From NCBI RefSeq assembly GCF_003704095.1, contig NW_020847347.1:124001-188000 (forward strand): DNA of 64,000 bases, written 5' to 3'. The translations under genes were made by a program, and so were the position numbers. Shown in pieces: positions 3-64,000 of this stretch (position 1 is the stretch's first letter; each line of letters starts with the position of its first letter). The notes beneath the pieces were generated by a model. The model saw nothing but the letters and a program-made list of their open reading frames with translations, was not told the origin of the DNA and made no database searches. This DNA comes from Pocillopora damicornis (Eukaryota).

Positions 3-3000
3 ATGGCTGGAAGGATTTTTCTGAGGCAACTAATGTTATTTAACACCCTGAATTTTCTCACTCGTTTCGGTACTGCTGTAGAAAAGCTGGATGTCAACAT
101 TGCGGTGTTCTTTGACATGGATGACATCTTCCAGGAATATGTCTTCAAGTCGGCCGAACAAATGTTCCGATCAAGAAAAGTTGTAACTGGTAATGTGACT
201 CCTAATGAGTTCTTGTTGGAGATGCATTTTTCAAGGCCTAATTTAACCGATGTCTTTCCCCTCGAATATGGTTTGAGTGGTTTGTTTCCCAAGATTTCAA
301 ACATCACTTCTGACTCCCAAGGCGTAATCTTCGCCAATGTAACAAAAGATGGACTACTTTATTCCTCGCTTTTGGAGAGTTCCATGTTTCCATCAATTGG
401 GCTACTACAGAGCAGAAGGGCATTTCCCATCACACAGGTAAATTAAAAATTCATCTGTCTAGCTTCTTTGTTTCAACTAAACTCACCTTTGACGCCCGTT
501 AAGTGGTAATCTCAAGCGATTTTTCAATCTCTCCACTGATGTCAGCGAATTTCAATTTTTGGAATTTTTTTCATTACATAGGATATAAAAGCTTTATAAT
601 TTGGAAAAAATCTGTTAGCAGTTTGTTTCTTTTTTTAATTTATCTACCTTTCATCCATATAACCAGCCAAGTTAACATCACATTTGGGTCAAAAGGAATT
701 TAGAAATTCATCTCAGAATCTCGTCCCTCGCGGAAGCTCTTTTTCGCTCATCAGCAAAAGAGCGCGTAACGAACGCTAGGAACTTAATCAATATTTGGAT
801 ACTGCTGCTTTCACACTTTTGGATGATATTTACAAAATAAATACAATCGTTTTATTTAAATTTCATCGTTAATAAAAAAAATAAACATGCTTGAAAAAAA
901 TTGTTCGAGTAGATGCGATTGAAAAAAATTCAAAAATATTGTGCTATCAGATATCAACTTGGCTTAATAAATGAATTTAACCACTAGGAATACTGGCAAG
1001 AAATGAATATTTATACTAATGTTTATGTCTAATGTGATATCGTCAACGTGTGTTAGCGCCTGCCCATTTTAAAGCCGACAAGATCTTAGTGCCCCCTGCA
1101 ATCGCCTTGAAAAGCTACCTCATAAAATCTCGAGAAAAGGCCTAAAAAGAATTCTCCTTTTCCTTTCATTTTTTCGTTTTACGGAAACGATCAGTTATAT
1201 AACTTAGTTAATCTACCATTCAATGCGAAAATCCGAAGGATAGTCACTTTTGAATGACCAAAAAAAAAAAGAGGAAATTTCCGACAAAAAACATCTGCGG
1301 CTCGAAGTAATTTCGCCATCTATCTAGGGTTAATTAGACTAAAAATAGGTTGAATTAAATTTTCATATTCATTTTCAAAAGGCTAAAGAAAATATTCTTT
1401 CATATATTTAAACCTTTGAAACCTAATAATTCAGTGGGAAAGTAATCTAAAATTTAGATATTACATGTTTCAAAATATTGCTTGGCTTTTCATTAACATT
1501 TTTTAAGATTATGAATTTTGGGAAAAATTCATCTATTCTAAAGTCAGTTTTGCACCATAAAGGTAACAAAGCTGTCATTATTGTATCACGAATGAAAGCT
1601 TTCATGAAGAAATAGCTGGCGATAAAAGATAAGCACAATTCAAACAGAGATCAGACATATTAAGCTAGTAAACGAACGACAGGCGGTTAGCATAAGTTAA
1701 GGAAATCCTTTACAAAAATGATAAAATATGAATGAACCATTCCATTCCCGTCTGGTGACGAGCAGTTTAGAATTTACAGTTATTCAACAATAATTGTTGT
1801 TTTTTTTCTATATTGGAAGCTCATCGTTGACTTTCCTCATATATAGACGCTTGTTTCAAATGGTTGTGTGCTATCTAAGTAGCTCCCTTGTAGTTATTTA
1901 ACGAACGGCCATATTCATGTAGAGACAGTAATGTGTTCCATTGTGGTTCTCCAGAAAACATACCCCTTTATTTTACTGATTCGTAATCAAGACATTTTAT
2001 TAACAATTTTCATTTTTATTTGTGGCACTAGAGCAATTTAATTGTAAATCACTCCGGCTGATATGCTTATATGTATATCTGTTCTTTAGAGCAAATAGTT
2101 ATCCGACTGTGGCTGTTAAGCTTGAAGAAAACTTTGATGTTCGAAATAGTTTGCCTCGATTTCACTGCGAACAAGCCTCAGAAATGTTTCCGGTCCCCCT
2201 TTGCGGTAATAATTTAAAGGCAACACTTTCAACGCATCAGAAGCAAAACTAAACCCCATCACTGTGACATGACCAAAAGCGTTTTCCACTTTAGAATGGA
2301 ATCGCTTCCCCCTTTGTACAATATGGAGGAAACGTTCTGTGTTATCCCGAGGTACCCCCTTTATGCTATCCTATTCCTACATTTAGAGAGCTGCTGAAGA
2401 GCAACGGCTTTCGTAAACTTTCTTTGAACATGACTCTGAAATAATAATATTACGCTAAGAAATAAAAGTAAATGATCCAAAAGGTATTCAGTAATTGAAA
2501 ACACGGTGTATGCTAGCAGCTGCTTTTTCACGTATTGAATCTCTGTCTTCCACGTAAAAATCACCTTAAACGAGAACAACACCGAAAATATAGGTATGGT
2601 AAGAAAGAAAATCACCAAATTTAGGGAAAAAAAATCAACGCGGATTAGAATGGCTGGGGATGTAAAAGGTATACAAGGATTGAAACTTGAACAAATGTAG
2701 GCTGAATTTATCACTTCAGGTGCGCTGACAAATCGTGAAGTGCATCTATGGAAATCGTTTTTCGTTTGTTTGTTCGTTTGTTTCTTTGCTTTGATTGTTG
2801 GTCTGTTATTTTCAAAAGGAAAGTTCTGGCGGATTCACAAGAGTTGCAGCGCCATCAATAATGGAATATGCACAAGTAATGGTGAAAATTACGGAGAAAA
2901 TGGGCTGGAGGACCCTCAGTTTGGTGACATCAGCCACGTATGAGGGGCATGTATTTGCTGACGCTCTCAAACGCTTAGCTCAGGAAAAGAAATGGCGTGT

Positions 3001-6000
3001 ATTAACCTCATTATGGATTCAAGGAGACGAAAGTCTTCAAGAAATAACAACGGGACTTCTGCGCGTTATGTCAGCCAAATCGGATGTAATTATCGGGCAC
3101 GTTCGTGAAAAGAGCAACGACAATATGTTTTGGACGATTCAAAAGTTGCAAGCCATCGAGAATAGTAGCGTATGGCTCGTTACTAGGCCTACCACGTACG
3201 GTGTACAGAACATAAGTTCGATTCCAACTGGACTGACTCAGATCAGCTGCAAATTACCTGAGGTTGGACATGATTATGAGTTGTACGTAAAAGCATTGTA
3301 CGATTCTTTTGTCATGTTCGAAAGTGCTTTTAAAATTTCAGTGAGGACAATAAACAATGAGCGAAAACAGGTCCTGAACACTTCAGAGAAATACAAATTT
3401 CTGCGGAGAACGGCTATGATGTAAGTCAATGATCCATCTTAGAACTTGTAAAGTTTCTCTTTTTTTGGTTGTTTCATTTCACTCATTCATTGTGCAGATA
3501 CAGTTTAGCGCTGAGAGAGAGATAGCGTCGCTTCTCAGGAAGGAAGCACTGAACTAAGGGAAGTAGATGAGTGGGATAAGGGACGGATAGCTCCATTGAT
3601 GAGTTTGCAAAAGAATACTGTCTCCAAAGTGCAGCTGAGTAGGACCACGTCTCTGTGAGCGGTTCTCACAGAGATGTGGCGGTACTTGTCTTGTCAAATT
3701 ACTAGAGGTCACTTTCGTTTGAAAGATTTATGTATGGTACGTACAGAAAGCTAGATGAATCACTTCAATGCCAGGCAGTTCAATTTTTTTCCATCTTAAA
3801 CTGAACACTTTACCTCGACAATGTACAACAATAACCCAAACTCTAGTGTATCAGAAGTTTACGTAACCAGTCGTTGATTTGATCTTTTGTTCGAAAGTTT
3901 ATTTATTCATCTATCCTGGTTAATCATTCGTCAGGGGGATAGATCGCTCGTTCTTCTCTTTAATTAGCCCTCTTTCATCCTGTACTTTTTGTTCCTTATT
4001 TAGCCGTTTAAAGGATACTTACATAAGAGGTAGCAGCAAGCTTTTCAGAGCTCACGATTTATCAGAACAACACCATTCAGCCTTTGACATCTGGAATTTA
4101 AGGGAGGATCTCAATAGCAGGAAACATTGGCAACATGTTGGACTTGTTACAACAACTGGACTCGCATTAGAGCCCATTGCAAACCACAATGGTAACACCC
4201 TCCTTCCACCACTACATCCTAAGCACCCCGTCCTGCGGGTGCCTGTCGTCGAGTGGCCCCCTCTCGTGGTCTCAAAAGATCCAGCGTTGACGATGAGCCG
4301 CAAATCATGCGTTGGAAGAACTTTACCTTGCTATAAGTACTTAAGTGTCCAAAATTCTACGCAGACGACTAAGCAACTTCTTTGCTGCTATGGAGCGTCT
4401 ATAGACTTTTTGAAGTTTCTAAGAAGAGACCTCGGGTTTGATACGGAAATTTATTTCAATCTAGATGGGCGATACGGGAAGTTCGAACCCGTGAACAGCA
4501 CCTGGAATGGAATTATAAATGAAATTATCTCTGGCAAAGCGGATCTAGCTCTCGATGTGGCCGGAAACTTTGAAAGAGCAGGGGTAGTGGAATTTGCATA
4601 CCCTAGCATTGCATCAGCAATGAACATTTTGGTCAGGAAAGATCGCTCCTACAAGGAACAAGGTATAAGGTTATTTTGCAATGTAACCGGGTTTGCTTAC
4701 TTGCAAGAAAGTGTCCAGGCTCGATTTAAAATCAGATCAGTGCCGATATAAGTCGGGACTCAATTGGTCCTGATGTAACACAGTATCCAGTATGACATTG
4801 TTAGGAGTAAGTGAGAATACTTTCAGATAGTGTACTTTTTTATTTTTAATTTTTTGTCATCTTTTTTTTTTTTTGCAAAGAAACTCAATTGTGGAAATCT
4901 TTAAAAAATGTAATTTAAATACTTCTACTCTTTTCTCTATCAGTAAGCATCTGGTACTCTTGGCTGGAACCGTTCCGATATGAGCTTTGGATCGCTATCC
5001 TGGTGACATGTAACGTGATCCTGTTTGTAGTTTGGTGGCTTGACAGGAAGAGTCCAAAAGGATATTATGTCCTCCTCAAGGACAGTGACGAAGATGCTTT
5101 TACACTTCTAGGTAAGAAGCAAAGCAAATCCATATGGTTTTTAGCAAGGGATGGGAACGGGAAGAAAAAGATAAGGCATTTATCGCCCGGTAACCCTAGC
5201 CTGGGACATCTTTGTTGACGATTCGTACACTCTAAAATGTTTTTTCAACTTAAAAGAATGATGACTCGGGTCCAACCCGACTTATGATGACTCAGGTCCT
5301 AGAAGCTTTATACACAGCATAAGGGACTTTTCTCTCCGCTGGATGAGTGCACTCCTGAAAAGGACGGTTTTTGTTAGTGATGACCGACTTTCAGACAACC
5401 GAAGCAGGAGTCATCTTAAGGTCAGGTGTCTAAGTCAGAATAAAGTACCTTTACCTTAATGATGACTTCCACTTAGATTGGTTTGTCGAAACCCAAGTCA
5501 CCGTCACCGTCACCGTAAACGAATTCTTTTAGATGAGCCTTCACCCGGACGATCATGCTAACGCTATCGGGTTGATATCATTAACTGTGCTAAGACTTTC
5601 TTTCCAGACGCCATGAGTTATGTTTGGGGCGTGGCATTTAGTAAGGACATTGGTGCGGAAAAGACTCCACGCAGCAACAGCGCTCGTACCGTTTCCGCGG
5701 TTTATGCGTTACTGGCCTTGATCATGGTGAATACCTACTGTGCAAACCTCATGGCCTTCTTACTTGATGATCCATACAAACTGCCCATCAGTGGTGTAAA
5801 AGATGCCAAAGTAAGTGCCGTTTATCGAACCTTGTTCAATTGAGTATGAAAAGCATCAAGAATTGTAATGTGTTTGCTAGAACACGACCTCTAATTGGTT
5901 CAGGAAGCTTGCCTCACTATCTCCACCGATCAGAAGAAAAATGTATTTAAAACTTAATCAAACTCAGATTGCATTTTAGTTACTATTCATTCCCGACGTT

Positions 6001-9525: not shown

Positions 9526-12500
9526 TTAAGCCCAGGGATTCTTGTTTTGTTCAATTGAATCTGAGGGAAAAAATGGCATATTATTTAAATTGGTCTTTCA
9601 GTAAACTATCATCACATATCATATCCTTTAAAAATATAATATGTATCGAGAAATGAAAACTACGGGGGAGTTATTGAACTATCGTTCACACACCTTGTAC
9701 TAAGTCGTCGGCAGATTCTTCCACAAGGCTGTGTTTGTCAAAGAGACCTGGCAATTCGGGGACCGTGCTGGCCACAGAAGACTGAGATCTACGCATTGAC
9801 ACTTCCTGTGAACTGAGGTGAGAGTAAAATCAGAGAATCACTTGGACGACTATTCCAATCTAGGCACACAAATAAGCCTCTCTATCGACAAGTAAATACA
9901 TGAAAAACTCATTACAAACGTTGTTCTCTATTGTTTAATTTTACAGCGAAAAAACAGTTCGCCTCATCGTCCTTTCTTGGCCCTCTTCACATCGTGTAGA
10001 GAGTCTTTCTTAAATCATTATTGTTATTATTATCATTATTCTTTAGCGTTATGTGACAACCAAAGTACTAAGCAAAGACACAAGGCCATCAAACTTGGCT
10101 CGTTACTTTAGTTAAAAGTACCTCAGCTGTCGAAGCTCTTTACGAGAAACCCTAACAGGAGTAGAAGCTTGAGAAGGAACTCCCATTCCCTTTTCGGCGA
10201 GAGAATGCTTTAAGTTAATAGATAACAAAATGGAAGATATCAATCAATCAATCAATCAATTTGAAGTTCAGTTTGTCCGTACGTTGGTCCGTGAGTCAGT
10301 CAGTCATTTAGTCAACCAATCATTCAATAAGTCAGTCATTAATTCAAACAGTCAATCAGTTACTTATTGAGACAAGATAATTTGGTTTTATCAGATGAGT
10401 TGAAGATGTGAATTGGCCACCGTTCAGAGAACCTAAAGCCTATGTTCGAATGTTAGACCCTTTTAGAGCGCGGATTTGCTCTGACGAAAGGCTGAAGCTG
10501 GAACCTCAGCTTTAAAAACTCTTTACGGTGGACAATTCACATTATAAACTCAATTGATGAAACCAAATTATATTGTAATACGCCCCACCAACGCAGCACC
10601 ATAGTTTATTTAAAGACTTACCCTTATTATTCAGTTATTGAGACAGTCAGTGAGCAAGTCGATCAGTCAACAATCCAGTCTGTCGGTCAATCAGTCAGTC
10701 ATTTACTCAGTAAGTCAAACAGTCAATCAGGCACAAAGTCAGTCTGTCAGTCAGTGAGTAAAACAGTTATTTTATTAGTCAGTCAGTCAGTGGACAATAA
10801 GCTAACTAACCAACGGCAAAAAATTAAAAAATGTTAGAGAGTAACCAAGGAATTACAAAGCCAAAGAGGAAAACAAGACACCCAACGTAGGATACCCAAA
10901 ATGCAGGCCAAAAAGGAAGCCAACAGTCATTCTTACAAAATCACCAGGGGAATATTTACCTTCATACGGGAAACGTCTGTCGCTAATTGCTTGGTGTAGA
11001 CATCTGTACTTTTATGCTGAGCTTCCACTTCACTACTGGCCATAAAAACATCCGATTCAACACTGGTACCCATTCCAGACACCATCTTCTCTCGCAGTTT
11101 CTTTTTCAGGTCGCGGCTTGTTTTCTTGTAGTAATACAGATCTTTCTCCAACTGTTGGGCTCTATTTTCAAGTTCACTGCGATAAAAGAGAAATATTTGG
11201 TTTAGTTTACATGCTATCACAATTGTATCATTTTCTTTGTGTCCGTACGACTGCAGATCTTCATTTCACCCTCAAGACAGGACATAACCTTTTATCTACA
11301 TACAGTATTTTTCTACGTGAGCTATGGTAGACATCACTCTTGGCTGAATTACACTTCAACGCTATGCTTACATTATTTCTTTCAAACAAATGCGACAAAA
11401 CCAAACACAAATATTAAAAAACAACAAAAACAACTACACGGTATACCAGCGAAAAAGGGTGACTTAAATTCTGCATTTCAAACTAAATCAAATATGACCC
11501 GGATTGTTGTTACGTTTTTCAATAAGGTACCTTATTCTCTCATCTGGTGTCTCATTTAACTCAGCATCACGAAGTTTGTTCATTAAGAACTGTATCCTCT
11601 GTTCGTATTTCTTTTGATGCTCCACTAGCCTTCGGTCCCCTTTTATTCCAGCTTGCTGCAATCCACGACCTAGTTCACCAATGATCCGTTCTTGCTCGGT
11701 TATACGAACCTGGCGAAATTCAATGTAAAAAAATGGTAAGTAACATACTCGTGTTGCAAAGTAATCTACAAAATTTAATCTCAGATGGAAGCAAAACATT
11801 CTCACGGAGGGAGAGCCAGTTTTCGCTGTTCTATCCTTTTGCTGATTATGTATTTATTTTTCTCCGAAGAGGAAGACGAATTATCATCAGACTGCCTTTC
11901 ATACGTTACCCCATCGCTGATTCATTTATACTTACCTCCAAATCGCTACAATGCAGCTCCAGTTTCTTCTCACTTCCCCGTAACTCGACAACTTTCTCAA
12001 AGTATTTTGACAACAGGGCGGTGGCTTCCCTTTGTGAGAGGTTACTCAGCTTGTTCATCAGTCCTTCTCGGTCTTTGTCTGTAAGAAGTTTACCACCGTC
12101 CAATTCTTTTTGTTGGGTAGCAATTCCATCGTTTTTAAACTCGATCGCAGCTTCTAGCGCGTCGATACCTTCGTCTAATTCAATAAGCCTGGACAGAACA
12201 GAAGCATATCTCAATAGTGTTTGGTTTTGCTTCAACCAAAAAACCTCGGTATGATAAAAAATGACTTTGGTTGCTGTTAAAACGATCGATTGATCTTCAT
12301 TACATGAACCTCATGTCAGTCATGAGATTTTATTAGGATTACTCCCCAGAAGTGATATATATTTATTAACTCTCGTCACCTGTCAGCTTTACGGTGTATT
12401 GATAACGATTCTGAGAGCTAGGGGGTTTAAATATGTCTACTTTACCTCCTTTCTTCCTTTGGATCTAACAAGGAGCCTTCCTGTAGTTTCTGCTCCAAAA

Positions 12501-15500
12501 GTTCACGTTGTTTTAGAAGTTCATCTTTTGTTCTCTCCAAAGTTTTTGCACTTTCATTGCTCTTACTTTGACTTGAAGCGTCAGTTTCTAGAGAATAAAT
12601 TATGGTAAAATGATTATAGGCGTTTTGTGATAATTCAAATTATTAAAATGTTGTCTCACTCTTAGTACATTTAAGTGTCTAATCCCAGTCCGCATAGCAT
12701 AAAATCCTAACCTTGGCATATGTTGAACGGTACAAGTTCTTGCTTTATTTTCGCAATCAGTGATAATAGTGAGGAAATCGAGCAAACGAATAACAACAAT
12801 TGTACACTAGAATAAAGCCATGCATGGAAAACTTAAAGAATCCAAGTGGTATTCTGTGTGATGAAACAGATTGTCCCAGTTAAATAAAAAGGATCTTGAC
12901 CTTTCCGGCATTTCTGTCTTTTCTGTCACGACGGAGACGTCAATCGACTTTTAAGATAAAAGTAGTTCGATGATTCTCTGGTGAAGTAGCTCTAGGTGAT
13001 ATTTCGTATAAACCAGTAATTCAGGATTTTAACAAAGAATCCTACCGTCCACATTTTTCCCTTTTTGTTGGATCTGTTTGTCAACTTCTCCAAGTTGGTT
13101 AGATAGTCGAAGAATATCCTAGAGGATTCAAATGAAAATGATTTTATCATTAAGAAGGTGTCGGAGTCCACACGTTTATTCGAGTTGAACCCTTTAGTCC
13201 CTAAGAGTGACTAGCATCTAATTTCTCCTTACTATATCACCCCTGAATCAAACACGAAAGTCATGAGAATAGAGCAGATGATCACCAGCTAAAGCAGCTC
13301 TTGACTGTTAAACAGATTCTCCTTGGCAGCCTCTTTGGAAAATACATGGAAAACAGTAAGGAGAATATGCATACTGATGTTAGGGTGTAAAGGGTTAATG
13401 AAGTGGTTTAATTCACTAAACTATTTCTCTTCTCTGTGACTTAATAGTTTGAACAAGGAAGTGTCTCCTTAAAGAAAACATAAAAGTTAAAATGTGTTTT
13501 TTTTCTTACCTTGGTAAGTATCTGGCTAGAGCGTAGTTTCTTCATTTCCAGTTCACTTTTCTCGGCCAGCATGGCTTCTTTGTTTAGTAGGATGGCTTCT
13601 CTTTTCTTCAGCTCCTCTGCTAAAGCTTCCATGGCCTCCTTTCTCCTCAAAACTTTTTCGACTTCATTATCCAACCATTGACGGCGTTGCTCTAATTTTG
13701 CTTGTTCATCGCTGTAAACAGAACAGTAGACGTCCTGGGGGTATCATAATTTTTTGGTTTGGGGTAAAATTCAAGAGTAATCACCGCAACGATTAGGGAG
13801 CTCTGCGATCTCGCTCGTTCTTTAGTAGTACATTAAAATGTGGCCTGTCTGGGGCTTTGCCTAATAGGAATTAGTGAAAGAAAAGCTGGCCAGTGCTTGT
13901 TCAGAAGTGAACTCCTAACCCAATGAACCTTTCTCTGCAATACCGTATCTAGGAAGATTCGTACCTCTCCTTTTCTTCAGATCCTTGTTTGCCAACACTT
14001 CTAAGTCGCCGCTTAGCGGCTGCCACCTCTTCTGTTTTCCTTTTGAGTATCTTCTGCTGCTGGCTCATATTATCTTCAAGTTCCTTGATCTTGTGCTGTT
14101 GTTTCTGCATTTCTCTCTCCATTTTTATTTTCCTGTCAGCCTCTTCTTTAAGCTTCTTCTGGAGCTGATCCTGTTGATTTCTCATCCTGTCAATGTGCAC
14201 CTCGAGTTCCTGAACTTTCTTTTCCCTCTCTTCGTGCAGGGCGCCTATTTTTTCATTGTCCTATGGAATATTTAAAGAAAATGAATAAGAAAAAGGTTAT
14301 CTTTTTGACTAGAAATTTCGAAATGCAGACCCATGCATGATACAACTGACTCAGTTGCGAGACCAACTGTTCAAAAAAGTTCTGTCCAAAACCTTACGAA
14401 TGATCACATCGAAAAGAACCGATACCAAGCTACAAAAAGATGGGTAAGAGAGAGAACGCTATGGACGCAGCGGCCTAATGCGCTGCCTTGGTCTTCAAGG
14501 CGGTCCAGGTTCCAGTGCTGCTATCTCGAATGTTCCAGCTGTTTACCGAAGGAAACGAGAGCCATTCTCGTACATTTCATCTTACGAGTAGGCAAAACAA
14601 GATAAGCTCTCTTCTGTGTCTTTACGGTTGGAAAGAACGAAGAAGTGCCAAGTATAACATAGAATACTTGTAGCAGCTTAAACGTCCAAAACATAAGTCT
14701 TACCTTTTGCTTTCGTTTCAAAGCCTGAAGCTTGGCCTCCACCGCCTGCAACTTTTTCTTATACTCAGTTTCGACTTTTTGTTTCTCCGCGACTTCGTGA
14801 TTAGTTTTAGATTCGTATTCTTCCAGAGTTTTCTTACTTTCTTCCAACTCTTTTTTGGCTTTTTCCAACTCCTGTTTCATGGACTTTATTTTCTCGGAGT
14901 ACTGCTTCTTTGTGTCCTTGGCTTCCCTATCACTCTTGGCTAGTTCCTTGATCAACTCCTCTTTTTGCCTAAACATTTATAATCAAAACATCACACATTA
15001 AACAAAAGAGGCAAGAGGCAACTATACAGCTAATTTCTTTCAATAAGGAGAAGGATATAAAGGTTTTCATATAAAACGTGCACTGGCTACCGAGGAGAAG
15101 GACAACGAAGGGAAGAAAGGGAAGGAATAGAAAGATTGGGGAAAAAAAAAGAGGGGAAGGGAGGAGATTGAGAGGGAGAGAGAGGATGATGAAGTAAAGG
15201 AGGAGGATGACACGGAAAAAGAGGAAAACAAGAAGGATAAGGAGCAGCAAGAGAGGGGCGGTTGAAGACGCTGAAAGAAACGAAGTGGGGGGATGAGGAG
15301 GGGTGATGGGGAAGAGGACAAGGAAGACGAAGAAAAGGAGAAGGAGGAGAGAGAAGCGAGGGAAGGGATGGTTGATGGAAAAGTAGGAAGGGGGAAGGAG
15401 GGAAACGAAGAAAACGTGAATGTGAGGAATGGGGAAGATCAACTTTGAGCAACGGTACCTTATATTAATAGTTAAATCCCTCAGTTTTTGCTGGGCGGAG

Positions 15501-52719: not shown

Positions 52720-54725
52720 ATGGCCATCTTCTTAATTGGGCTGATTTTACTCGTACAATCTGATACAAATTTTGCCTCTGCCTCCAGACAAACAAATTTT
52801 TCCTCGTCGGGCCTTCAAAACCAGCTAGAGAGGAACAAACACTGTCTTAAATATGATTACGAAATTCAAGACACGCTTACCTCGACGAAGCCTCCGTTTG
52901 ACAACTACTTCAACATATCCCGTGCCGTTTATCCCTCAGAGGAGCTATCGTCTAAACTTATAAACATCTGGGTACATTTTACAAACTCTTCTACGAATCT
53001 TACTCAAGTATCCTTACGGAAGTTTATTTGGAGCCGCTCATGTTTGTATGTAAGCGACCGATATTTGAGCTTGCTAGCCATAAGTTTGTATTCGCTGGGT
53101 TCAATATGGCCGGACAGAAGACAAGAGATCCTACACATAACAATTCCTACATTTTGCAACTCAGAGGCATCAGAACAAAAACTCGTTCAATTTTTGTCGA
53201 CGGTAAGTCCAGAATATGAATCAAACTTTACATTAAGATTTTAGATATTGTAAGATTATAATAAGATACATATATTTACTACATACATTTCTTACAATGC
53301 AGGTCTCCTCACAAACTCTACCTACAGAACACTATTTACGCTAATTACAATACAGGCTACTCAGTTACACCGCCAACAGAACAACAATCTACTTATGTTA
53401 CTTGCCAAACAAACAGTTACTTACAGTACTTAAAATACGTTATACGAAACACTTTAAATCACTTGCAGTACAACATTCTATTTACGACACAGTTCACAGT
53501 TTTCTTCAAGCCTCGCTCTCGGAAAGCTGTTCGCATCTTTGAACAGATAGTGTTCGTGTAAATTTTCGCGCAAAATAGAGGCTATTTTTTATTTAAAAGT
53601 TTCCTTTATGGTTCTACCAAGTGTCAGTTGCTTTGTTAAGCAATAAATAATGATAGCTAAATGTCAGAGTATGTTATATAAATAAGCTATGATTTTGCAG
53701 GTTTTTCTTAAGTTTTTTCAACTGAATGCATGCTATTGTTGAAGGTGACGTTACAACTGTAATCGGAATTTTCATTTTAAGAAATGTTAGTATTCAAATT
53801 ATATTTAAAATGTAAATTAGATTACGGTGAAACAGGATGAAAAATGTCGAACTTTTCTTCTTTTTGATGATGACACGGAGATAGTTTATTGATGTCTCTT
53901 TTGTTTCTTTTTCTTTTTGTTTTGTTTCTGCAGCTCGAGGACATCGCTGTCATTCCAGCCCAACTAAATCCTGCTCTGAACCACGTCGAATGTGTTATGG
54001 AAGAAAAGCCTCCTGGCTTCGAGCTACAAAGAGCCAAAAAGATATTTCCTCACGTTTGTTGGGCATTTTGGTTTTTCTCTATAATTGCTGGATATTTTGC
54101 TACAGTTTTGTTTATTCAGCTGTTCCAAGAAAAAAAAAAGGATGTTGCGGTTAGTTCGACATTAACATTTTCAGTTACTCTCTTCTATGTAGGATTACTT
54201 TTTGGCATAATTGCGATTGTTTATAGCACGCGTAAGGGAGGATACAAAATGGTTTACCCTTTTATTTATTTATCTTCCATGGGATTAACATATATACTTG
54301 GTTACGTTTATTGCTGCGTCTCCTTAGAAGAAAAAAAGAAAAGGTGGAAGCTGGCGCATGTTTATCCAAGTAGCTTTGTAATGATTCACTCTATTCTATG
54401 GATGATGGTCGGAATGATAACAGAGCCTTACTGGGCTATCCCTGTCGTAACATTGCATGCGGCAGCAGTTTTCCTTTTCTACCTCCTATTGGGTTTTTAT
54501 TACTCAGATAGGGATTGGGATATCCGAGACAAAATTAACTTAACTTTGCTTTTCATTTTATTGATGTCGATTATATCCGTACAGGTCTTATTTTTTTTGG
54601 TCGTTAGCCACTTTTTTAGAGAAGGATTAATTTTCAGTGCTATCCCTAGTGTTTTGATTATAATATTAGGCTTTTGGTGTAAGAATTTCACACACTCGTC
54701 CCAAGAGCCAGCAAGTTCGCTTTAA
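52720..54725 (+). CDS. Uncharacterised membrane protein: signal peptide, ~190-aa Cys/N-glycan ectodomain, ~7 TM helices; ~424 aa, 2 exons
   Basis: Exons 52720-53202 (GTAAGT donor) and 53934-54725 (polypyrimidine + CAG acceptor), phase 0. Signal MAIFLIGLILLVQS, NxS/T sites, and seven hydrophobic segments in exon 2. Confidence 0.8.
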
Positions 54726-57354
54726 GTACACGGTGTAAATGCTAATAATTGCGAGCATTAATTTCTTTAAATTCTTAAGCAATCTGAAACGTTTACCATA
54801 GAAGTTAGCTTGAATCTTTCAGGATATTAGTAAAAATCCTGACCAAAACTTGTGGGCTCTGTGCTTTATGACACAGAGGAATGGGATGATGCAAAACTTA
54901 AGAACGAGTGCTCAGCCATGGAAATTTGCATAAGTATGCCGTTACGCCTCTCCAAATAAACCCAAGTCATAAAAATTGCTGGCTTAATATGGAAAAATTA
55001 ATTTATAAATATCGTAAAAGGGCTAAGTGTTTATTTTTGACGGAGAGATTCGGCGGGCGTCATTTCGAGTGCTGTTAGACTGCACTCTTGCTTCGTTGGG
55101 GAACCATAAGTTAACAATTATTTACCGAAGTGGGGGTGAACATTAGTGGATATTTACCGCGCCGCGAAATGGGAAGGAAATTATTCCTTACGTGCGATTT
55201 GCTCTCTTTGGCTGCTCGATGGTGAATGGTACTTGATATTGACTTCCGAAACTTTTGATCACGCGTTTTTTATGTACTTAAGACTGTTAATGGTAGGCTG
55301 AACATTATTATTTCCGTGGCTTGTCGTGACTCGCAAAAGTGATTAAAGATTTACAACGCTAGGAATGTCATTAATGGTGTCGTTTTTCTCGTAATTATGG
55401 TAATCACAGATAACATGTTGGAGTGTATTATATTTCAACCAATGAGCAATTTTTAAAGTTGTTCTGTTTCTTTAAAGAGCTACGTCGTGATATTTTTTAA
55501 GCCATTTTGAACGTCATTAGATTGAAGTCACAGAGAAGGGCCTCGGGAAAATAGTGCTCTAGCTAGCACACTAAACACTCAGGTAAGAAAATTGAAAGTC
55601 AAAGACAAAAAAAAAAGGCTCGAAGATGCCCATGGATATTTTAGACATCAAATGAAGATTTTGGATAAATTTTCAGTGGTGTTCGAGCTGCTGTGCGGTC
55701 TTCCTTAACAGGTTGTGGGTTGTGGGTGCGACCTTCAAGTTTCGTGTCTTATAAGACCGGCTTGGATAATTCTACTTTATTCCTTGTTCTTGACCATTAG
55801 TTTCATTCGCGTATCTAGTCAATGGCGCACTAAAGGTATCAGATACCTTACAACTAAATACATAATTTAAATTTCAAAAGATCAGAGCTTTGGTGTCTGA
55901 TAATTCCGTAACTGTTTGCAGTGCCCTGTTAGAATTTTGACTCGTTAGCTTTCCAAGTTTAACAACTGTTCAAGAATATATCGCGGCCCAAAGCCGTACG
56001 TTAATGGCAATGTTGCATTCTAAATATATGATGAAATCATCTGCAAATGAATATGCACTGATTAATTCGAATATTCAACATTTCCGCCCGGGCAACCCAT
56101 GGGGTATTTGACTCAGTGTCGCATGGGCCAGAGAGTAGGGACTTTGACAAGAGGCCCTTACGGGGTGTGGAATTTGAACCGGAAGGTCGAGCCTTTCCTG
56201 CAGAATACACGTGTTTTATCTTTTGATATGAACGAGTTTTAAGGTAAAAAGGTTGGTTTCGTGAGCGAATGGCTCAAAAGAAAAGCTCGACAAGAACTGC
56301 GCAAAAGTTGATTTGCTGAAATTATATTTGCTGAAAGTTTAAAAGCTTGAACTGTCAAATTAATTGCTGGTCAATAAGTAGAAAGTCACGGTCCCTAATC
56401 TTGCCTTTGTCATAAAATAGCTTTGAAAAAATGCTGTAAATTGGATGTCAACCTCTCTCAAACAGTATTAAATACATTTCATCGGAGACTTTGTACTCCA
56501 AAGCGCCAAAAAACTAATACATTATTCGTTTTTTCCTCGCTACTTTTTTAAAATATTTGTGTTTTGGAAGGGGCATTTGAGCATAAAATGCAGCCGTTGA
56601 TAGTGTATTTACACGCAATTTTAGTCCACGGGGATGGAAATTTTCACGTGTCACTCGCCTCTTGCGCCTTTCTATCAGGTTGATAAATGAGTGGCAAAGC
56701 GTTCACCATTTTCACTCCATGCCCGTTTGTCGAATCTTCTCTCATCTTGTCAGTGAGACCAAATATCATTTAAACACTCGAAGTGAAATATTCCACATCT
56801 ACGTGCGCCCATGTGATATTCTCTATAGATATCACAATCAGATGTAACGATACAGTATGCGAATAACGAAACGATTCTCAGAGGTGTGCTGCAGAAAGAG
56901 AAGCCTGGAAAAATTCACGCTTCATTTGAATGTGAGAAAATTCCCCCTGTGAGAATAACGGGCCCCTTACAATTTTCTGCGCTTTCAAGATGTGGCTGTG
57001 TACATCATTATTAGTAGTAGTAGCAAAAGTTACTTGCTAGTAACCAGGAAACAAAGGTTCGAATCCCGTTGAAGCGAAAATTAGTCAGGATTCTTTCAAT
57101 GCAATTTTGTTTTCAGTGCAGTTCACCACACGGAAAGTATCATTTCGCTACTTGGCCGTCATCTGCACTGAGGTCAACATCAAATTTATATCCCTGATTT
57201 AATTCTAAACGAAAACGTCCCTGCAATTGATTGGAAATGATTTGAACAGTAAAAACGGCACTAATTTATCGTCTATAAAGATGGAAAAGCAATTCACTTA
57301 TGGATTATTGTTCTGTTTTCTTGCAGCGGATTTTGTAGATATTCTCACCAGAAA

Positions 57355-59157
57355 ATGGCTTTTTTTTCTAGAGCATTCAAAAATCGAGATTGCGACGTGC
57401 CAGATTGTGTGTATCGCCTAAAATTTGAACGAGATAGGCAAAAATTAATTGCAGGAATTGCATGTGCTGTGGAAATTGACGTACCAGACGGAAAGGAATA
57501 TTATCTGCTTACTTGCAAGAAAATTATTTTGAAAAATGGGGAGCCACGTTTTTATGCTCATCAGTGGAGGAAGCCACTCTACCGCCTCAGGCGAAACGGA
57601 GACCTCGACATAAACGGTGAAAATTGTTTTTTAAAGCAAAATTTCTGCTTCCTGACTCCTCCCAATCACTGGAAACCGGATAAGAGCCTGAAGGTAAAAT
57701 CATGCGATGCGGGAGACAATCTCGATTGGATTAAATCGTTGATCATTGAGAATCGTCACATATACCGTGAAATAGAATGGGTAAAAGACAGTGAAACAGG
57801 TAAGTACAAGACTAAAGAAAATGAGGACTTAGAGGATCAAACATCACTGGGCTCCCCAGTTCTGTGGAAAGATCTTGAAACACAACGTTTTTACGTCATC
57901 GGCGTGGTTGACAAAGAAGAAGAAACCTTTTTGCCACGACTATTTGGGGCGGATGATCTGAGAAATCTCGGTAAGTTCGTTATAATATTCATTTGTTTTA
58001 ATTAATTAAAATATTGATCACCTTATAAGTCACCTACCGGCCTTTAGTCATGTTTGGTTTTAGATAAGGGTGTAGGAAAGTATTACCAGAGTAACTGGTT
58101 TGAGCCCCCGGTGTAACATTTGGTCGCGTACCCTGATTGTTTAGCTGACAAGAGTGCTGAAAAGCAATGTTTTCGGTGGTAATGACTGATGTTTGAACAA
58201 ACTTAGCGGCAGTCATCATCAGAGTCAAGACAGTCGAGTGTTTCTCTGGTTCGTGAAAGTTGATTGGCCAGTTTTGCCATGATGAAATTGGCTGAAAGGC
58301 TCAAGTGACGTGACGCACGTCGGTCTAATTGCTTAGTTTTGGTTATCGTTTGAATATGCTGGTAATTATCCTTAAAACATTTTTTTTTCAATCTAGCCCC
58401 AACCCAACTATTCCTTCACTACCTTTGCATTTGATAGGGTTTGACTTAATTTTTCTCTGTCTTGTACAGTTTATACCAAAGATAATATTCTCGTACATTT
58501 TTAGCGTGGACCTCTGGCTCGAGACCGCGCAAGCGGTCTTCGTGTTTTAATGTTAAACAAATTATTTCCTTCCTTATTTCTGTTACTGATTACGGGCAGG
58601 TTCCCCAGAGATAACTGAACATCCTCAAAGCGTCACGAAAAGGGAAGGGGAAGACGTAACATTATCTTTCGGCGCTATTGGAAATCCAGAGCCTGATATA
58701 TCATGGAAGAAAAATGGATCAACTCTAACGGACAATGACAAGATCAGTCTGTCTGATGACAAAAAGAAGCTGACTATAAAGAATTTGACAAAGGAAGATT
58801 GTGGAGTATATCAAGGTGTTGCGAGTAACACTTTTTCAGTTGTTAACTCCAGTTGTGCTATACTGGATGTTCAATGTAAGTATTGAATGCTAACCATCTC
58901 AGTTGTGTCTACAAAAAACTCTCGAATTTGACTCGTTCTTAACTGGGGTTAAACTGTTTAATTACAAGCTGCTCGTAGGCGGACAGGCCAAACTGGACAT
59001 AAATGCATTTAGTCTTTCGCGACATAATCTTCTTTCCTTTACTCACTTTTCCTCTGCAGATGATTACAAAAAAATCTCAAAGGTTTTAGCTGTCCTCCTC
59101 ATCCCGGCAGGGCTTTTCCTACTCCTTTTGATAACAGGCAAGATACATCTGGCGTAA
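57355..59157 (+). CDS. Uncharacterised protein: trypsin-like pseudoprotease domain + I-set Ig domain + C-terminal TM; ~329 aa, 3 coding exons
   Basis: Exons 57355-57970, 58600-58875 and 59060-59157, joined by phase-1 introns. The Ig exon, missed by the ORF track, reads GSPEITEHPQSVTKREGEDVTLSFGAIGNPEPDISWKKNG...LTIKNLTKEDCGVYQGVASN...ILDVQ. The last exon reads YDYKKISKVLAVLLIPAGLFLLLLITGKIHLA*. Confidence 0.78.
58140..58230 (-). mobile_element. Penelope-type repeat fragment with decayed hammerhead motif
   Basis: Minus strand TGACT-CTGATGA-TGACTGCCGCTAAGTTTGTTC-AAAC-ATC-AGTCA. Stem I (TGACT/AGTCA) is retained but the GAAA core is damaged. Confidence 0.5.
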
Positions 59158-60015
59158 CATGGAATAGATTGAGTAGACTTGAAACAAAGGCCAAATGAAA
59201 AAAGTGTTTTGATGATAAAAAAAAAAGAAAAAAAAGGCATTCTTTTGGTATATAGTCGTTTGCAAGAATAGCCATAATAATTAGATACTTTTAACTAAAG
59301 ATATGGGACGCCCGTCCGTTGTAAAGTGTGTGTGATACCATATGGCATGAACATTTTGAAGGCGGGTCTTAATTACTGGACCGCCGAAATTATAACCTGA
59401 ATTTCCGTTAAAAATTTAGTTTGCGAATTGCTGGAAATAACAAATCATCAGGAAAAGAAAAGAAACATTCCAAACTCTATAAAAGTCTAACAGACAGCGC
59501 ACTCCACACATTTGATTCATTTAATTGAATTCTAGTAAATCGTAGAGTTTTCCACCTATAAGGACTGATACAGTAAGGAAACTGAATGAAAAAACCTACC
59601 CTAGCCCACCTACGTATCCCCAAAAGTTTTTCGACCTTGCAGCTTCAGGCCAATCTGCAAAGCCCCCCAAATCAAAACCCGAAAAATGTCCATGCCACAT
59701 GAAACAGAGTAATTTGTTATGGGCAAGACACAATTGCTGTTGAAACGTTTGCTTTGGAGCAACTTGATGACTGTAAAAAAACGAGCCTTACATCAAAAAG
59801 CGTCTTTTATTAAATGGGCACCAACGATGGCCCCATGAATGTCCACGTTAACTAATCAAGAAGTTAATCTAAGGTTTGTTACCGAGGGTGATTTTACAAT
59901 AAAGTGTGATAAATACATCTGTTCCTGTATACGTTTAACTTTGCAACGACTCAATGAGATGGACAAGACACATCACATAGCTTATGCGCAGATCACTTCG
60001 AAGCTTTAATTACCC

Positions 60016-60115
60016 NNNNNNNNNNNNNNNNNNNNNNNNNNNNNNNNNNNNNNNNNNNNNNNNNNNNNNNNNNNNNNNNNNNNNNNNNNNNNNNNNNNNN
60101 NNNNNNNNNNNNNNN
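60016..60115. other. Assembly gap (100 N)
   Basis: Run of exactly 100 N, so the true distance and orientation across it are unverified. Confidence 1.
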
Positions 60116-61524
60116 TCAGATTGCAAGATTCGTTACCGTGCCCTCTAAAAAAACAATAAATGAAAATATCAGTTTATTATTGCCATTATATCAAAAAATG
60201 GTCGACACGCGATTTTGTCTCTTCAGTTGCTCAAAGGTGACTAGTTGTTTTAGTACAGACAATGATACAAAAAACGATTTTAACTCATTTATACTACCAA
60301 CAATGAAAATATTTATTTTAGGCGCAAATCCCGCCCGAGTTATAGGAGGTGAATAGCAAAGGATATATATTTAGAGTTTGAGTACCCAATCAGAGCGCGG
60401 CTTCGACGCTATCCATCGTTTCATATGTAACGTAAATTAAAACTGATGTAAATTGTTTTAAATGCCGCGACCAATATTGTTTGAGACTACGTTAAATTAC
60501 TCCAACCAATTTTCTGGTTCACTTTCGATGTCCATGACCTCTTCAACCTATGAAAAGGCACGAGATAATTAAAAAGATAGATAATAAAAGATTTGTCTAG
60601 ATCTGTGTCCCATGTTTATCACATATCGTCACCTTAATTAAGAACAAGTCTAGAAGTTTGCATAGTCAATCAGAGCGCGCCTTCGAAACTATCTACTGTT
60701 TTAGTATATACTAAATAAAGATAACCATCAGAGGATAGCCACGACAGTCAGGCACTCTCACAGTTGAGCTAGCCAGAAGACGCATCCGAATCTCCAGTCC
60801 CTAAGTCATTTACTAAATACACGTGATCTACTGTCACAAATACCTTCCGTCCCATTCCACCATGACCAGATCATGTTGTCGAGAAACGAAAAAATCTTGA
60901 ATAGCAAAAACTCCAATAAAGAATCAGGAGAAACTATGAAAAAAGGAGGAAACTTATTAAATGTCTATAAAATGTTAGTTTCACTATAATTAACATTACA
61001 ATCGAACCTCTAAAAGTCATAAGGGTTTAGTGGTTTTAAGGACCCCCCCAGAGAAAGAATATTGGCCGTGTATGGAGAAGTGACCAACCGATCATTATCT
61101 TTCGCCTTCAAGGGGATTGTGGTTGGAATTGAAGGATTGGCCCTTGATTTTTCGGCATTTTACTCAAGATCAGTGTTTCGAAATGCCAACTATATCTTTG
61201 TTTATGTCCCGTAACCGCAAAGGCTTACGATCATGCAGAAAGACATATAATCACTCGCAGAGCCAGTAAGCCACCAAGTAAAAAGATGAAATGATTGCTT
61301 CTGGCGCAGCTCTTATAATTTCCAAAGAAAGTGAGTCAAGGGTAAGATAGGACTACCAGTATCTTTTTATCATTTCACCAGCTTTTACATGTTTGAATGT
61401 TCACCGTGTTCAGTTTAAAGACGGATTTTAAAGGCTCCGTGTTCGGTTCCTACCACTGTATCCTAAATTAAAAATTTGAATTAATAATGCAATCTAATTG
61501 TTACTTAAGATGGCTAGAACTTAC

Positions 61525-64000
61525 CACATGCAATCTGGACTATGTTTGGGCCCTCCTCTACCCTTGTGCTCTCACCACACTGGTTTGTGGCAGTTACTTG
61601 GAATTCATACATTTTCCCGCTTTCTAAACCAACGACTTCATGTTGAAGCACGTCTCGACCACTTACTTTTCTTTCCCAGTTAGAACGTGAACCATCTTCA
61701 TTGACCTCTCTTTGATAGACTATATACTCTGTTATCACTGCACCATTGTCTTTAGGTGCTCTCCAAGTCAAGGTCACTCTGTCTTCAATTATTTCACTTG
61801 GATATTCTACAATTTTCACTTGATTGGGAACACCTGCAGAAAGGATGGAATCATCATCAACCTTTTCTGATCTATGTATTATCACTATCATAATCTTGGA
61901 TACTCAATATGCCTCGGAACCATTACTGACTTCTTTGCCAAACTGATTCCTTAAAAAATACCTCTTGCTGCAAACTGCAAATCTAACTATACGTAGAATA
62001 ATTTCCGGAAATATTGAATGAAAATTTTTTGAAAGAGTTTATAAACTATGCTTTTCACTCTGAGCCTCAATTAAGACAAAATTAGGCGTAGGTTAAGAGT
62101 CTTAGTTTAAAATATTTTACTATCTACGTCTTTGTGTATCAATAATGATTATCAGACAAAGGTAAAATACCTCGGGAATAACCTGATGTTATAAAGAGTT
62201 CTTTAAAGGGTAGTTTCACAAAGAACCAAGTACATGTTAGGAAAGTTCAACTATGGTTCAGTACCCTGATGCTTCCTGCTTTTTTTCAATTACTCACTGA
62301 AGAGCCACCCATCAGGTTTCAAATAGAGCGGAAGGCAGAGGGAATCATAAGCATTTTAAAAACACTTTCTCATTTACATTTTCAATCGTGAGAAAAAAAA
62401 AAGATAAGATGGCTTGTGTTTAAATGTTTTAAATTTTCCAAACATCAAGAAGAGTCCTCGTAACACCGGCGAACACATTATTATGCCACAACCCTTTCCC
62501 ATCCTATGCAGTGCAGATTCATGTATATAAAATATTCTTAATCTAATTTCATTTAGCTTTGTTAATTTCATTTAGTTGTAGTTTAAAGCCTCGTTTGAGA
62601 ACCTTACCCAACACTTTTACTCCGATTGTCGCGTCCTCTCCTTTTGGGCTCTCACCACACCTGTTTGTGGCAGTTACTTGGAATTCATACATTTTCCCGC
62701 TTTCTAAACCAACGACTTCATGTTGAAGCACGTCTCGACCACTTACTTTTCCTTCCCAGTCAGAACGTGAACCATCTTCATTGACTCTTCTTTGATAGAA
62801 TGTATAATGTGTTATCATTGCTCCATTGTCTTTAGGTGCTCTCCACGTCAACGTCAACCTGTCTTCAATTATTTCACATGGAGCTCCTACAAAATAGACT
62901 TGATCGGGAACACCTGCAGGAAGGATGCTAGCGATTAAATCCAACCTTTTTGGATACAAGTGGTTTCTTTTGACACTTGGGAATTATAAAGTTATTATAT
63001 GAGGGACTTGTTCGCCTGGTCGAGAGGTCTGAGTTTGGGACCTGGCTGGGTCAATGTGTGGTGTTCTTGGGCAAAACACTTTATTTTCACAGTGCCTCTC
63101 AACACTCAGGAATATAAATGGGTGCTAGCTAATTATAAATGTCAGGAAAGCCTGATGAGATTCTGGGGCAGTAACCCTGCGATGAATTTAAATTGGCAGC
63201 TCATCCAGGTAGTAATACGCTTTATGTTAAGGCAACCGGGATAAACTCCAGCTGAGCGGGCCAATCCGGGGAGGAGTGTCGAGGTCTGGACTTGTTTGCC
63301 TGTTCCTTAATGTCTAATAGACTCCCCGTATTATCACTTTATTTTATGTAATGACCATGGCCATTATTCGTATCATGATTTTTTGGTGTCCAAATTGAAA
63401 ATTTATCCCAGCGAGAAATGATCGGAGCGAAACCTTAAGAGTACTTTTTATGCTTATTGCAATGACGCCATGCTAACATGAAACCTTAATGATTGTCGGA
63501 CTATAATCTAAGTTATTTTAAGGAAGCATAATTATTAAGGATTTCAATACAGGTGATATCGTAATGGAGGGGGGGGGAGGGGGTTGGGAGGTTCCGTGTA
63601 TCCACTATAATCTAGAGCTTTATTATCACAGCTTTATGTCTGACGATAAAGGTAACTTGTCCTTTATGCGCAGAAAGACAGAATCATATACGTCATTTGT
63701 GGCTCTCCCTGAGTCATTATTTTCGGAGGAAAAGAAAAGGTAGACAATTGTTTCTAAAGCTTCTTACCACGAATAGGAAGTGAGGCGCTCTTGAAGAAAA
63801 TTGGGTAGTAAATGTTCTCTTCCTTACCAACCACTCCGACCACAAAGGTTTTATCGTTCTTATCAGAATATAGCACCGGTGAACCAAGAAAGTTTTTTCT
63901 GTCGAGGTCACGATCAACGGATAAAGAGTGATTCCCTGTGGTATTATCGTACAACCAATCAATAGATTGTGCTCGTTTTCCATCATCACTGAGAAAATAT
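61525..64000 (-). CDS. 5'-truncated paralogue: trypsin-like pseudoprotease domain + two fibronectin type III domains (C-terminus uncertain)
   Basis: Exons >64000-63768, 62608-62913 and 61525-61833, all flanked by phase-1 introns. The first reads SIDWLYDNTTGNH...NFLGSPVLYSDKNDKTFVVGVV and aligns with the 57355 gene. FN3 motifs LTWRAPKDNGA.IT.Y and GLESGKMYEFQVTATN.CGES. The next acceptor at 61462 gives GYSGRNRTRSL*. Confidence 0.8.
63005..63265 (+). mobile_element. SINE with conserved central domain (GGGCAAAACACTT...CAGTGCCTCTC...TATAAATGGGT); older reverse copy at ~43970-44150
   Basis: Central sequence resembles, from recall, the widespread tRNA-derived Deu/Nin-type SINE core. Confidence 0.6.

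Follow-up and report, generated by a model that had tools for sequence, protein, structure and literature searches.

Predicted trypsin-fold pseudoprotease domains joined to exchangeable phase-1 exons in genes of the coral Pocillopora damicornis

The window analyzed here is a stretch of 64,000 nucleotides from the coral Pocillopora damicornis (NCBI RefSeq assembly GCF_003704095.1, contig NW_020847347.1, positions 124,001 to 188,000, forward strand), and its last 6.6 kb carry two convergent genes that share a domain of about 200 residues, hereafter called the head. We regard it as very probable that the heads adopt the fold of trypsin-like proteases, that they have lost the catalytic triad, and that they belong to a modular family in which related head exons precede different kinds of downstream exons. 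With less assurance, we also favor the broader reading in which these pseudoprotease heads are expressed on shuffled tails and serve for binding rather than for cutting.

The two heads are 30% identical along the full ~200-residue domain (E = 9.6e-9 in a search of the 234-Mb genome assembly of 4393 contigs). Spliced models were searched exon by exon. The initial annotation of this DNA had proposed both a homologous domain common to the two convergent genes and a phase-1 intron at an identical position in each. Both proposals hold, wherein the exons of heads 1 and 2 each stop one base into a Gly codon that falls in the same alignment column. The open reading frame (ORF) of head 1 spans 57355 to 58005, and the exon proper stops at 57970, before GTAAGT. 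The complete ORF of head 2, read from the genome beyond the window, has 200 codons. Indeed, direct reading reveals that every internal exon boundary of genes 1 and 2 cuts a codon after its first base, and the annotated arrangement of the immunoglobulin (Ig) and fibronectin type III (FN3) exons as phase 1-1 cassettes is confirmed in the same way (Table 1).

Table 1. Coordinates of the gene 1 and gene 2 exons and of the assembly gap in the window (TM, transmembrane; a slash marks the exon end).
Feature	Position	Strand	Basis and remarks
Gene 1 first coding exon, putative pseudoprotease head	57355..57970	+	ORF, direct reading; 205 codons + 1 base, phase-1 donor G/GTAAGT
Gene 1 I-set Ig exon, phase 1-1	58600..58875	+	Pfam I-set 1.1e-18; acceptor used in RNA contigs
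Gene 1 predicted last exon (TM)	59060..59157	+	Strong acceptor and phase-1 fit, direct reading
Assembly gap	60016..60115	.	Sole N run in window
Gene 2 second FN3 exon (FN3B), phase 1-1	61525..61833	-	Pfam fn3 5.4e-11, direct reading
Gene 2 first FN3 exon (FN3A), phase 1-1	62608..62913	-	Pfam fn3 1.4e-9
Gene 2 head exon, 3′ part	63768..64000	-	Phase-1 donor; exon extends past window to equivalent of 64356

The evidence for the fold comes from structure prediction. An initial AlphaFold model made from 28 close sequences was poor (predicted local distance difference test (pLDDT) value of 58), with Foldseek matches that were weak though of the trypsin fold, and this model was replaced by a run with 54 sequences. 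With these 54 diverse heads, AlphaFold yielded a model with a pLDDT of 86, a predicted template modeling (pTM) score of 0.85, and the strand order of a double beta-barrel. With this model as the query, Foldseek matched no fewer than 500 chains of the PDB at E < 1e-3; the top-listed chains all have the trypsin fold, led by hepatitis A virus (HAV) 3C, HtrA1, the tobacco vein mottling virus and tobacco etch virus (TVMV/TEV) proteases, thrombin, and elastase. When the model was aligned with 48,161 chains by VIA-align, the best Z was 15.8 with a root-mean-square deviation of 2.9 over 169 residues, and 117 chains reached Z ≥ 8. The best 50 rows of this comparison are all PA-clan proteases or pseudoproteases, including protein Z, HGF, and haptoglobin. 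The protein-language-model neighbors of the head are likewise all PA-clan peptidase clusters (0.97), among them short bacterial Trypsin_2 proteins and S39 and 3C peptidases. The trypsin-like fold proposed in the initial annotation is therefore upheld, and the head as modeled is a chymotrypsin-type (PA-clan) double beta-barrel.

The catalytic positions of this barrel were located by comparison with active relatives. The genome contains genuine intron-free Trypsin_2 ORFs, seven of whose domains were aligned to form a profile. An hhalign comparison of the head profile with this seven-domain profile places LLTCxxV on vlTxxHV, xFSF on Dlall, and LGSP on SGxP, a register in which Lys56, Asn96, and Leu165 of the gene 1 head occupy the His, Asp, and Ser positions. 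These are the same three substitutions that had been assigned initially from the motifs YLLTCKKII (residues 50–58), NFCFL (96–100), and TSLGSPV (163–169), all of which are present in head 1 at the places given for them. Among 28 close and 32 diverse heads that were aligned, the His position holds K, N, R, D, E, S, G, or Q but never His, the Ser position holds L, A, V, I, H, E, P, Q, or R but never Ser, and the Asp position is variable and not conserved. The residue two before the nucleophile position is never Gly, unlike in the GxSG oxyanion motif, and no conserved His or acidic residue is present anywhere in the head domain of the aligned sequences. The residues that are conserved in at least 90% of heads (Gly34, Cys37, Thr53, Gly166, Pro168, and Gly183) are structural positions kept by active relatives too. 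Thus, the loss of the triad initially read from these motifs extends to the whole family, and by its residues the head is a pseudoprotease that has neither the triad nor the GxSG motif of active peptidases.

The family is small and has so far been seen only in coral-derived assemblies. The P. damicornis genome holds four heads and one broken fragment: three of the heads belong to gene 1, gene 2, and a tandem copy of gene 2 termed gene 3, and the fourth lies on contig C4262. The isolated fragment (C1436:9526-9714) matches profile positions 145 to 212 (E = 4e-8), contains an internal stop, and is probably a pseudogene remnant. Word-based searches recovered 28 orthologous ORFs (17 belonging to head 1 and 11 to head 2) with identities down to 51%, all of which comprise the head only and read on into the intron. 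A hidden Markov model (HMM) built from the heads and searched with HMMER against 1.84 billion cluster representatives retrieved just 42 at E ≤ 1e-3. Nearly all of these are single-exon ORFs of ~130 to 280 residues, and they also include several fragments of 48 to 81 residues and one 360-residue upstream read-through. Most full-length representatives finish in Gly-Lys, as a G/GTAAG donor would give. All family members that were traced derive from metagenome or RNA assemblies, several being Tara coral samples, and the nearest foreign contigs to the locus are Tara coral-sample scaffolds. Cluster look-ups yielded no member with a name or accession, and Pfam Trypsin_2 (PF13365) and Trypsin (PF00089) did not match heads 1 and 2, the fourth head, or eight relatives at E values up to 0.1, 1, or 10. 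Literature searches found no description of the head family, such that the initial statement that it is not a described one stands.

Tabulation of the exons behind related heads indicates that the exon shuffling proposed for the window is more extensive than its Ig and FN3 tails had suggested, since heads precede Ig, FN3, death-like, and putative NACHT exons. Different contigs carry, behind a related head, three I-set exons (contig L011), two Ig exons (L026), or one FN3 exon (L012). In another coral (L013), a 518-residue ORF with NACHT and NPHP3_N matches lies 2.8 kb downstream of a related head, and the head donor and the strong acceptor of the NACHT exon are both phase 1. Another related head precedes large ORFs that end in tetratricopeptide (TPR) repeats, and behind yet another lies an ORF for which a Pfam Death match is on record. 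An RNA contig from a close relative encodes a 396-residue product consisting of a family head, two short linker exons, and a C-terminal death-like domain. The fourth head of the P. damicornis genome, together with its death-like tail exon, is orthologous to this RNA contig. In the mRNA contig of this death-type member, the ATG is preceded by an in-frame stop, and no signal peptide is encoded. The language-model neighbors of the death-like tail are Death clusters (0.89), and a short BLASTP match (2e-9) links it to the start of the ORF with the recorded Pfam Death match. In all, the head exon ends in a phase-1 intron right behind the domain and is joined to symmetric phase-1 cassettes. A Tara contig (L009) carries a tandem duplication of a head plus death-like gene (601-3802 and 10001-13229), wherein the copies are 74 to 77% identical in the head and an extra death-like exon is located on the opposite strand.

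To examine splicing at the locus itself, we mapped Logan contigs from three studies, comprising four RNA runs, to window positions 57101 to 63100. The RNA runs that contain the locus are labeled as coral or marine metagenome. Contigs on the head 1 exon cover 57431 to 57969, and the joint from head 1 to the Ig exon (57970 to 58600, GT..AG) is present in two contigs from two studies (runs X1 and X3), one of which is without mismatch. For gene 2, an X3 contig on FN3A (62699-62914) reaches the acceptor and then continues for 119 further letters, the first 30 of which are the reverse complement of the final bases of head 2. RNA contigs thus cross the head-Ig and the head-FN3A joints, and both head donors are used as predicted. 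RNA depth in the FN3B region falls in the 61501-61700 bin (runs X3 and X7). No RNA contig of the four runs reaches the 5′ end of gene 1 or an exon beyond FN3B. The random-primed runs also cover intron 1, which indicates that pre-mRNA or DNA is present in them. In a high-depth polyA contig from X7, the Ig exon end is followed by the start of an Ig exon (58877 to 58603), with ~3% mismatches. This joint probably reflects either a tandem-Ig transcript of a relative or paralog (the Ig exon is also doubled in L026) or a circular RNA.

The remaining exons of gene 1 have been assigned by direct reading. Its Ig exon has lost the canonical cysteine pair, with Phe and Gly present instead, and still obtains the I-set HMM match; orthologs retain two, one, or none of these cysteines. 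The predicted last exon encodes a short linker and a single hydrophobic helix, after which five residues remain before the stop. Its ORF and acceptor are conserved in a 98%-identical relative, and a scan for hydrophobic tails in orthologous contigs found no convincing TM exon in more distant relatives. RNA contigs run unspliced over this region (59012-59204). Gene order and splice phase suggest a tail-anchor-like layout for the C terminus of gene 1. In a syntenic relative that is ~98.6% identical in flanking DNA, gene order is as in the window.

In gene 2, the two FN3 exons score 38.4 and 43.0 bits against a Pfam fn3 cut-off of 25. The FN3B donor (G/GTAAGT) requires one more exon downstream, and none was found by sequence reading or in the RNA contigs. 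A candidate for this last exon (59770-59610; phase-1 acceptor, 53 codons) was dropped, as a deletion of 2 bases shifts the frame of its 95%-identical gene 3 counterpart. Gene 3 lies ~8.1 kb further along, outside the window, and likewise has a head and two FN3 exons; the duplicated unit of genes 2 and 3 extends down to window position 59275. Heads 2 and 3 (L002 2079-2060 and L003 2073-2054) begin with Met-Gly-(Ile/Val)-Phe-Asp-(Gly/Ser), a start that fits the N-myristoylation pattern and is absent from more distant FN3-type heads. On the same contig and the same strand side as the head cluster, 12 to 29 kb past gene 3 and outside the window, are three Pfam Death-domain exons (contig positions 208858-209061, 210650-210901, and 225423-225602), and Pfam Death has at least 88 matches in the genome.

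The heads evolve quickly. By pairwise Nei-Gojobori estimates, a crude method, the ratio of nonsynonymous to synonymous divergence (dN/dS) for heads is 0.8 to 1.8 among close orthologs and paralogs, with the bootstrap 95% interval above 1 in two comparisons, and 0.45 to 0.63 for distant, saturated pairs. The corresponding values for FN3 exons are 0.3 to 0.9. Head ORFs are still open at a dN of 0.33, which together with the conserved core argues against simple decay. Divergence in head 1 seems four times that of the upstream noncoding DNA, and this excess was not accepted as proof of positive selection, since the adjoining intron is even more divergent and just three synonymous changes are involved.

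We tentatively propose that the head acts as a binding domain in immune signaling, a mechanism we hold to be possible rather than probable. In this proposal, the head would begin the protein at its N terminus, without a signal peptide, and would therefore be cytosolic. The conserved start position, the upstream stop in one mRNA, the loss of Ig cysteines, and the cytosolic partners of related heads also point to a cytosolic location. The barrel would be used to bind a peptide or protein and not to cut it, with the strands of the old cleft (GSP and VVGV) retained; both the conservation of these strands and the example of other trypsin-fold pseudoenzymes suggest binding rather than cutting. The variable tail would set either the location of the head, through a membrane anchor or an Ig or FN3 scaffold, or its output, through oligomerization of a death-fold or NACHT partner. 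Fast and partly diversifying evolution combined with tandem duplication would fit immunity or another form of genetic conflict. A role in immune or cell-death signaling is suggested by these same two features together with the death-like and NACHT tails and the Death exons near gene 3.

In a more specific version, which we consider unlikely, the head would be a bait, that is, a cytosolic protease mimic that is bound by a protease inhibitor or effector of a pathogen or symbiont, and the attached modules would turn this binding into a cell-death or immune signal. Such a bait might be an animal equivalent of the decoys integrated into plant NLR (nucleotide-binding leucine-rich repeat) proteins, assembled by phase-1 exon shuffling and shaped by diversifying selection, an analogy to which we give the same low weight.

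Several observations weigh against the reading of the heads as expressed, modular pseudoproteases that bind rather than cut. Searches of PDB sequences with phmmer and with profiles returned chance matches only (such as SYCP1, KPC beta-lactamase, and FBXO4), and no protease was revealed in the heads by Pfam, PDB sequence, or profile-versus-PDB searches. The hhalign score for the Trypsin_2 comparison is weak (P = 0.008, probability 4.8%), so that the triad register rests on the fold and the motifs. The Ig-to-TM and FN3A-to-FN3B joints were not seen in the RNA contigs of the four runs. Moreover, RNA contigs pass unspliced through the Ig donor, where the frame meets a stop after three more codons, and also across the TM acceptor. 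The continuation of gene 1 into Ig and TM exons, as initially annotated, is borne out by RNA for the head-to-Ig joint, which is found in two studies, and is a prediction for the step from Ig to TM. Likewise, the continuation of gene 2 into two FN3 exons is borne out for the joint from head 2 to FN3A, seen in one contig, and is a prediction for that from FN3A to FN3B. The 30 codons before the gene 1 ATG contain no stop and a candidate acceptor is located at 57326, such that a 5′ exon before this ATG is possible. The link between head and NACHT exon in L013 is suggested by gene order and splice phase. Pfam gives no match for the tail of the fourth member, and an hhalign comparison with 13 coral death domains reaches P = 0.028 across just 19 columns. 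Because neither Pfam nor hhalign confirms a death domain, we refer to this tail as death-like.

Two further points of this kind concern evolution. In two Tara samples of the syntenic relative, a 414-base deletion (window 58358-58771; L043 8979-8985 and L044 8306-8312) removes the Ig acceptor and the first 172 bases, or two thirds, of the Ig exon, while the head and TM exon are intact. As all cassettes are phase 1-1, a splice from head to TM in carriers of the deletion would stay in frame. The Ig tail is therefore dispensable in that relative, or the gene is decaying. In addition, a gene-wide dN/dS near 1 is also expected from relaxed constraint on individual copies.

The question of where the heads came from is separate, and one answer, which we judge somewhat unlikely, is compatible with heads that bind rather than cut. 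A protease gene of an RNA virus (sobemo-, astro-, or picorna-like) or a bacterial Trypsin_2 gene might have been captured, with activity lost after the domain was wired into host exons. The head is indeed a single intron-free exon, and its language-model neighbors are short bacterial Trypsin_2, S39, or 3C peptidases. The best structure matches in a viral library are compact S39/sobemo-like and astrovirus proteases, at an E value of 2e-6 that is slightly better than for the PDB matches. However, viral, bacterial, and animal proteases all score Z 14 to 16, and neither these structure scores nor the viral library separates the origins. Nor did the HMMER search of 1.84 billion representatives find any viral or bacterial relative, and the intron-free Trypsin_2 ORFs of the coral genome itself are an equally possible source.

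Decay of the genes, in which young lineage-specific duplicates are drifting to pseudogenes and the head is a functionless relic of an active protease, is in our estimation distinctly unlikely. It would agree with the dN/dS of about 1 or higher between close copies, the deletion by which a close relative lost the larger part of its Ig exon, the frameshift in the gene 3 copy of the gene 2 last-exon candidate, the stop-bearing head fragment elsewhere in the genome, and RNA contigs that are short and of low depth. The fact that more than 50 head ORFs of ~200 codons remain open down to 17 to 25% identity, with core motifs kept, is difficult to reconcile with this account, and neutral decay would have brought stops by the dN of 0.33 at which ORFs are still intact. 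Distant pairs have dN/dS values well under those of close pairs, both polyA and random-primed RNA from two studies show the heads spliced correctly, and the phase and position of the splice site are preserved across the family.

A second role on the protein level, which we find quite improbable, is that of secreted or type I membrane receptors for adhesion or recognition, for which an unseen 5′ exon would supply a signal peptide and the head, Ig, and FN3 parts would be exposed on the outside. Cell-surface receptors are typically built from Ig domains, FN3 domains, and one TM helix, and the open codons and good acceptor upstream of the gene 1 ATG, whose surroundings no RNA contig reaches, leave room for such an exon. 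The Ig exons of a distant ortholog, moreover, retain both cysteines. Against this stands the Met start found at a constant distance from the first strand in every family member, as well as the death-type mRNA contig with its stop before the ATG and no signal peptide. Furthermore, only five residues follow the TM helix of gene 1 in a predicted tail-anchor layout, its Ig exon is without both disulfide cysteines, and the death-like and NACHT partners of relatives are cytosolic. Finally, residual enzymatic activity by way of other residues (for example, the nearly invariant Cys37 and Thr53, each in at least 90% of sequences) or on something other than a peptide bond is highly improbable even with the cleft-building GSP and VVGV strands conserved, as no His or acid is conserved, the nucleophile position is aliphatic in most members with the -2 residue never Gly, and Cys37 and Thr53 are structural, with active Trypsin_2 domains conserving the same spots as G-S-G-F and L-T.

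The preferred reading of the heads as binding pseudoproteases relates them to known kinds of proteins, namely trypsin-fold pseudoenzymes and the shuffled N-terminal modules of coral immune genes. The PA-clan Trypsin_2/HtrA/V8, viral 3C, S39, and astrovirus proteases resemble the heads in the predicted double beta-barrel (Z 14–16 over ~170 residues) and in the three motif strands, which follow in the same order and register, and the ~200-residue size of the heads resembles that of compact bacterial and viral PA-clan enzymes. The heads differ from these peptidases in that the catalytic His and Ser are absent, the Asp is not conserved, Pfam Trypsin_2 and Trypsin give no match, and the domain serves as an N-terminal module in animal genes with several exons. 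A barrel that is reused for binding, with a triad wholly or partly dead, is characteristic of haptoglobin, HGF/MSP, protein Z, azurocidin, the arthropod serine-protease homologs, and the trypsin-like parts of Streptomyces umbrella toxins, and several of these pseudoproteases are among the best structural matches of the head (3f1s, 1si5, 4f4o, 8w20, and 9oee). The animal proteins among these examples are secreted and of the S1A type, and they carry signal peptides, disulfides, and sites of activation cleavage. In contrast, the N terminus of the heads is not hydrophobic and shows no signal peptide, the S1A cysteine pattern is absent, all three triad residues are missing, and the tails are of Ig, FN3, death-like, or putative NACHT type.

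FAM111A/B-like proteins are intracellular animal proteins, as the heads probably are, and share with them a trypsin-fold domain and intron-free coding. The genome holds FAM111-like ORFs of 500 to 725 residues with a C-terminal Trypsin_2 domain on contigs C574, C2278, C2851, and C3577 (L015-L018), and Pfam Trypsin_2 matches seven of its ORFs (E values of 1e-12 to 1e-25), most copies of which retain the triad. The heads are instead N-terminal, ~200 residues in length, dead, and followed by an intron, and the hhalign comparison with the FAM111-like domains yields only the P value of 0.008. In one FAM111-like ORF (L018), Tyr replaces the catalytic Ser.

Parallels to immune systems are also apparent. 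The coral NACHT/NB-ARC repertoire is described, as summarized in PMC4083563 from Hamada et al. 2013, as a lineage-specific expansion with tandem duplication and swapped N-terminal modules. Relative to that summary, one related head resembles the repertoire in preceding a NACHT exon with compatible phase, whereas the genes of the window are unlike it in carrying Ig/TM and FN3 tails rather than NACHT. Bacterial conflict systems pair death-like or CARD-like adaptors and STAND (signal transduction ATPases with numerous domains) nucleoside triphosphatases with trypsin-like peptidases (PMC8195603; PMC13236601), and the peptidase is treated there as an effector or signaling protease (PMC8195603). The same three kinds of module occur across the head family, namely a trypsin fold, a death-like fold, and a putative STAND/NACHT partner. 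The heads are distinct from the bacterial conflict peptidases, which we take to be active, in being dead, N-terminal, and linked to their partners by exon splicing in an animal.

The innate-immune and cell-death gene repertoire of corals is among the largest in animals, and many coral immune genes carry N-terminal regions that domain libraries do not recognize. One such region now has a predicted fold, a defined boundary (a single exon with a fixed phase-1 end), and a family profile for searching genomes. The few known trypsin-fold pseudoenzymes thereby gain a member that is probably cytosolic and has lost the whole triad. The family also illustrates how, through symmetric phase-1 exons, a single head can be combined with Ig, FN3, death-like, and putative NACHT tails. 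Should the head prove to bind a ligand, it would offer a route to asking what coral death-domain and NLR-type proteins sense, and whether evolution of the old cleft tracks pathogens or symbionts.

Upstream of gene 1, at a distance of 2.6 to 4.6 kb, are a 278-residue ORF with several hydrophobic helices (53889-54725, plus strand) and a 174-residue ORF with a signal-like start (52720-53244, plus strand), both of which are conserved in the syntenic contig L043.

The assembly gap sits between the gene 1 stop and FN3B, in sequence that is either intergenic, given the convergent genes, or part of the last intron of gene 2. Because it lies between the TM exon (59060-59157) and FN3B (beginning at 61525), no exon or junction claimed here spans it. 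We compared block coordinates and lengths around the gap with those of the paralogous tandem unit and of the syntenic contig of a close relative. The flanks are collinear with both, in the same order and orientation, and the homologous intervals are ~375 and ~860 bases, respectively, such that the true gap probably exceeds 100 bases. A replaced segment is located at 60366-60690. Immediately to the right of the gap, at 60116-60500, the RNA contigs reach a very high summed depth, and many of them stop or fork into differing continuations. This region behaves like a dispersed repeat or transposon, which may explain why the assembly breaks there.

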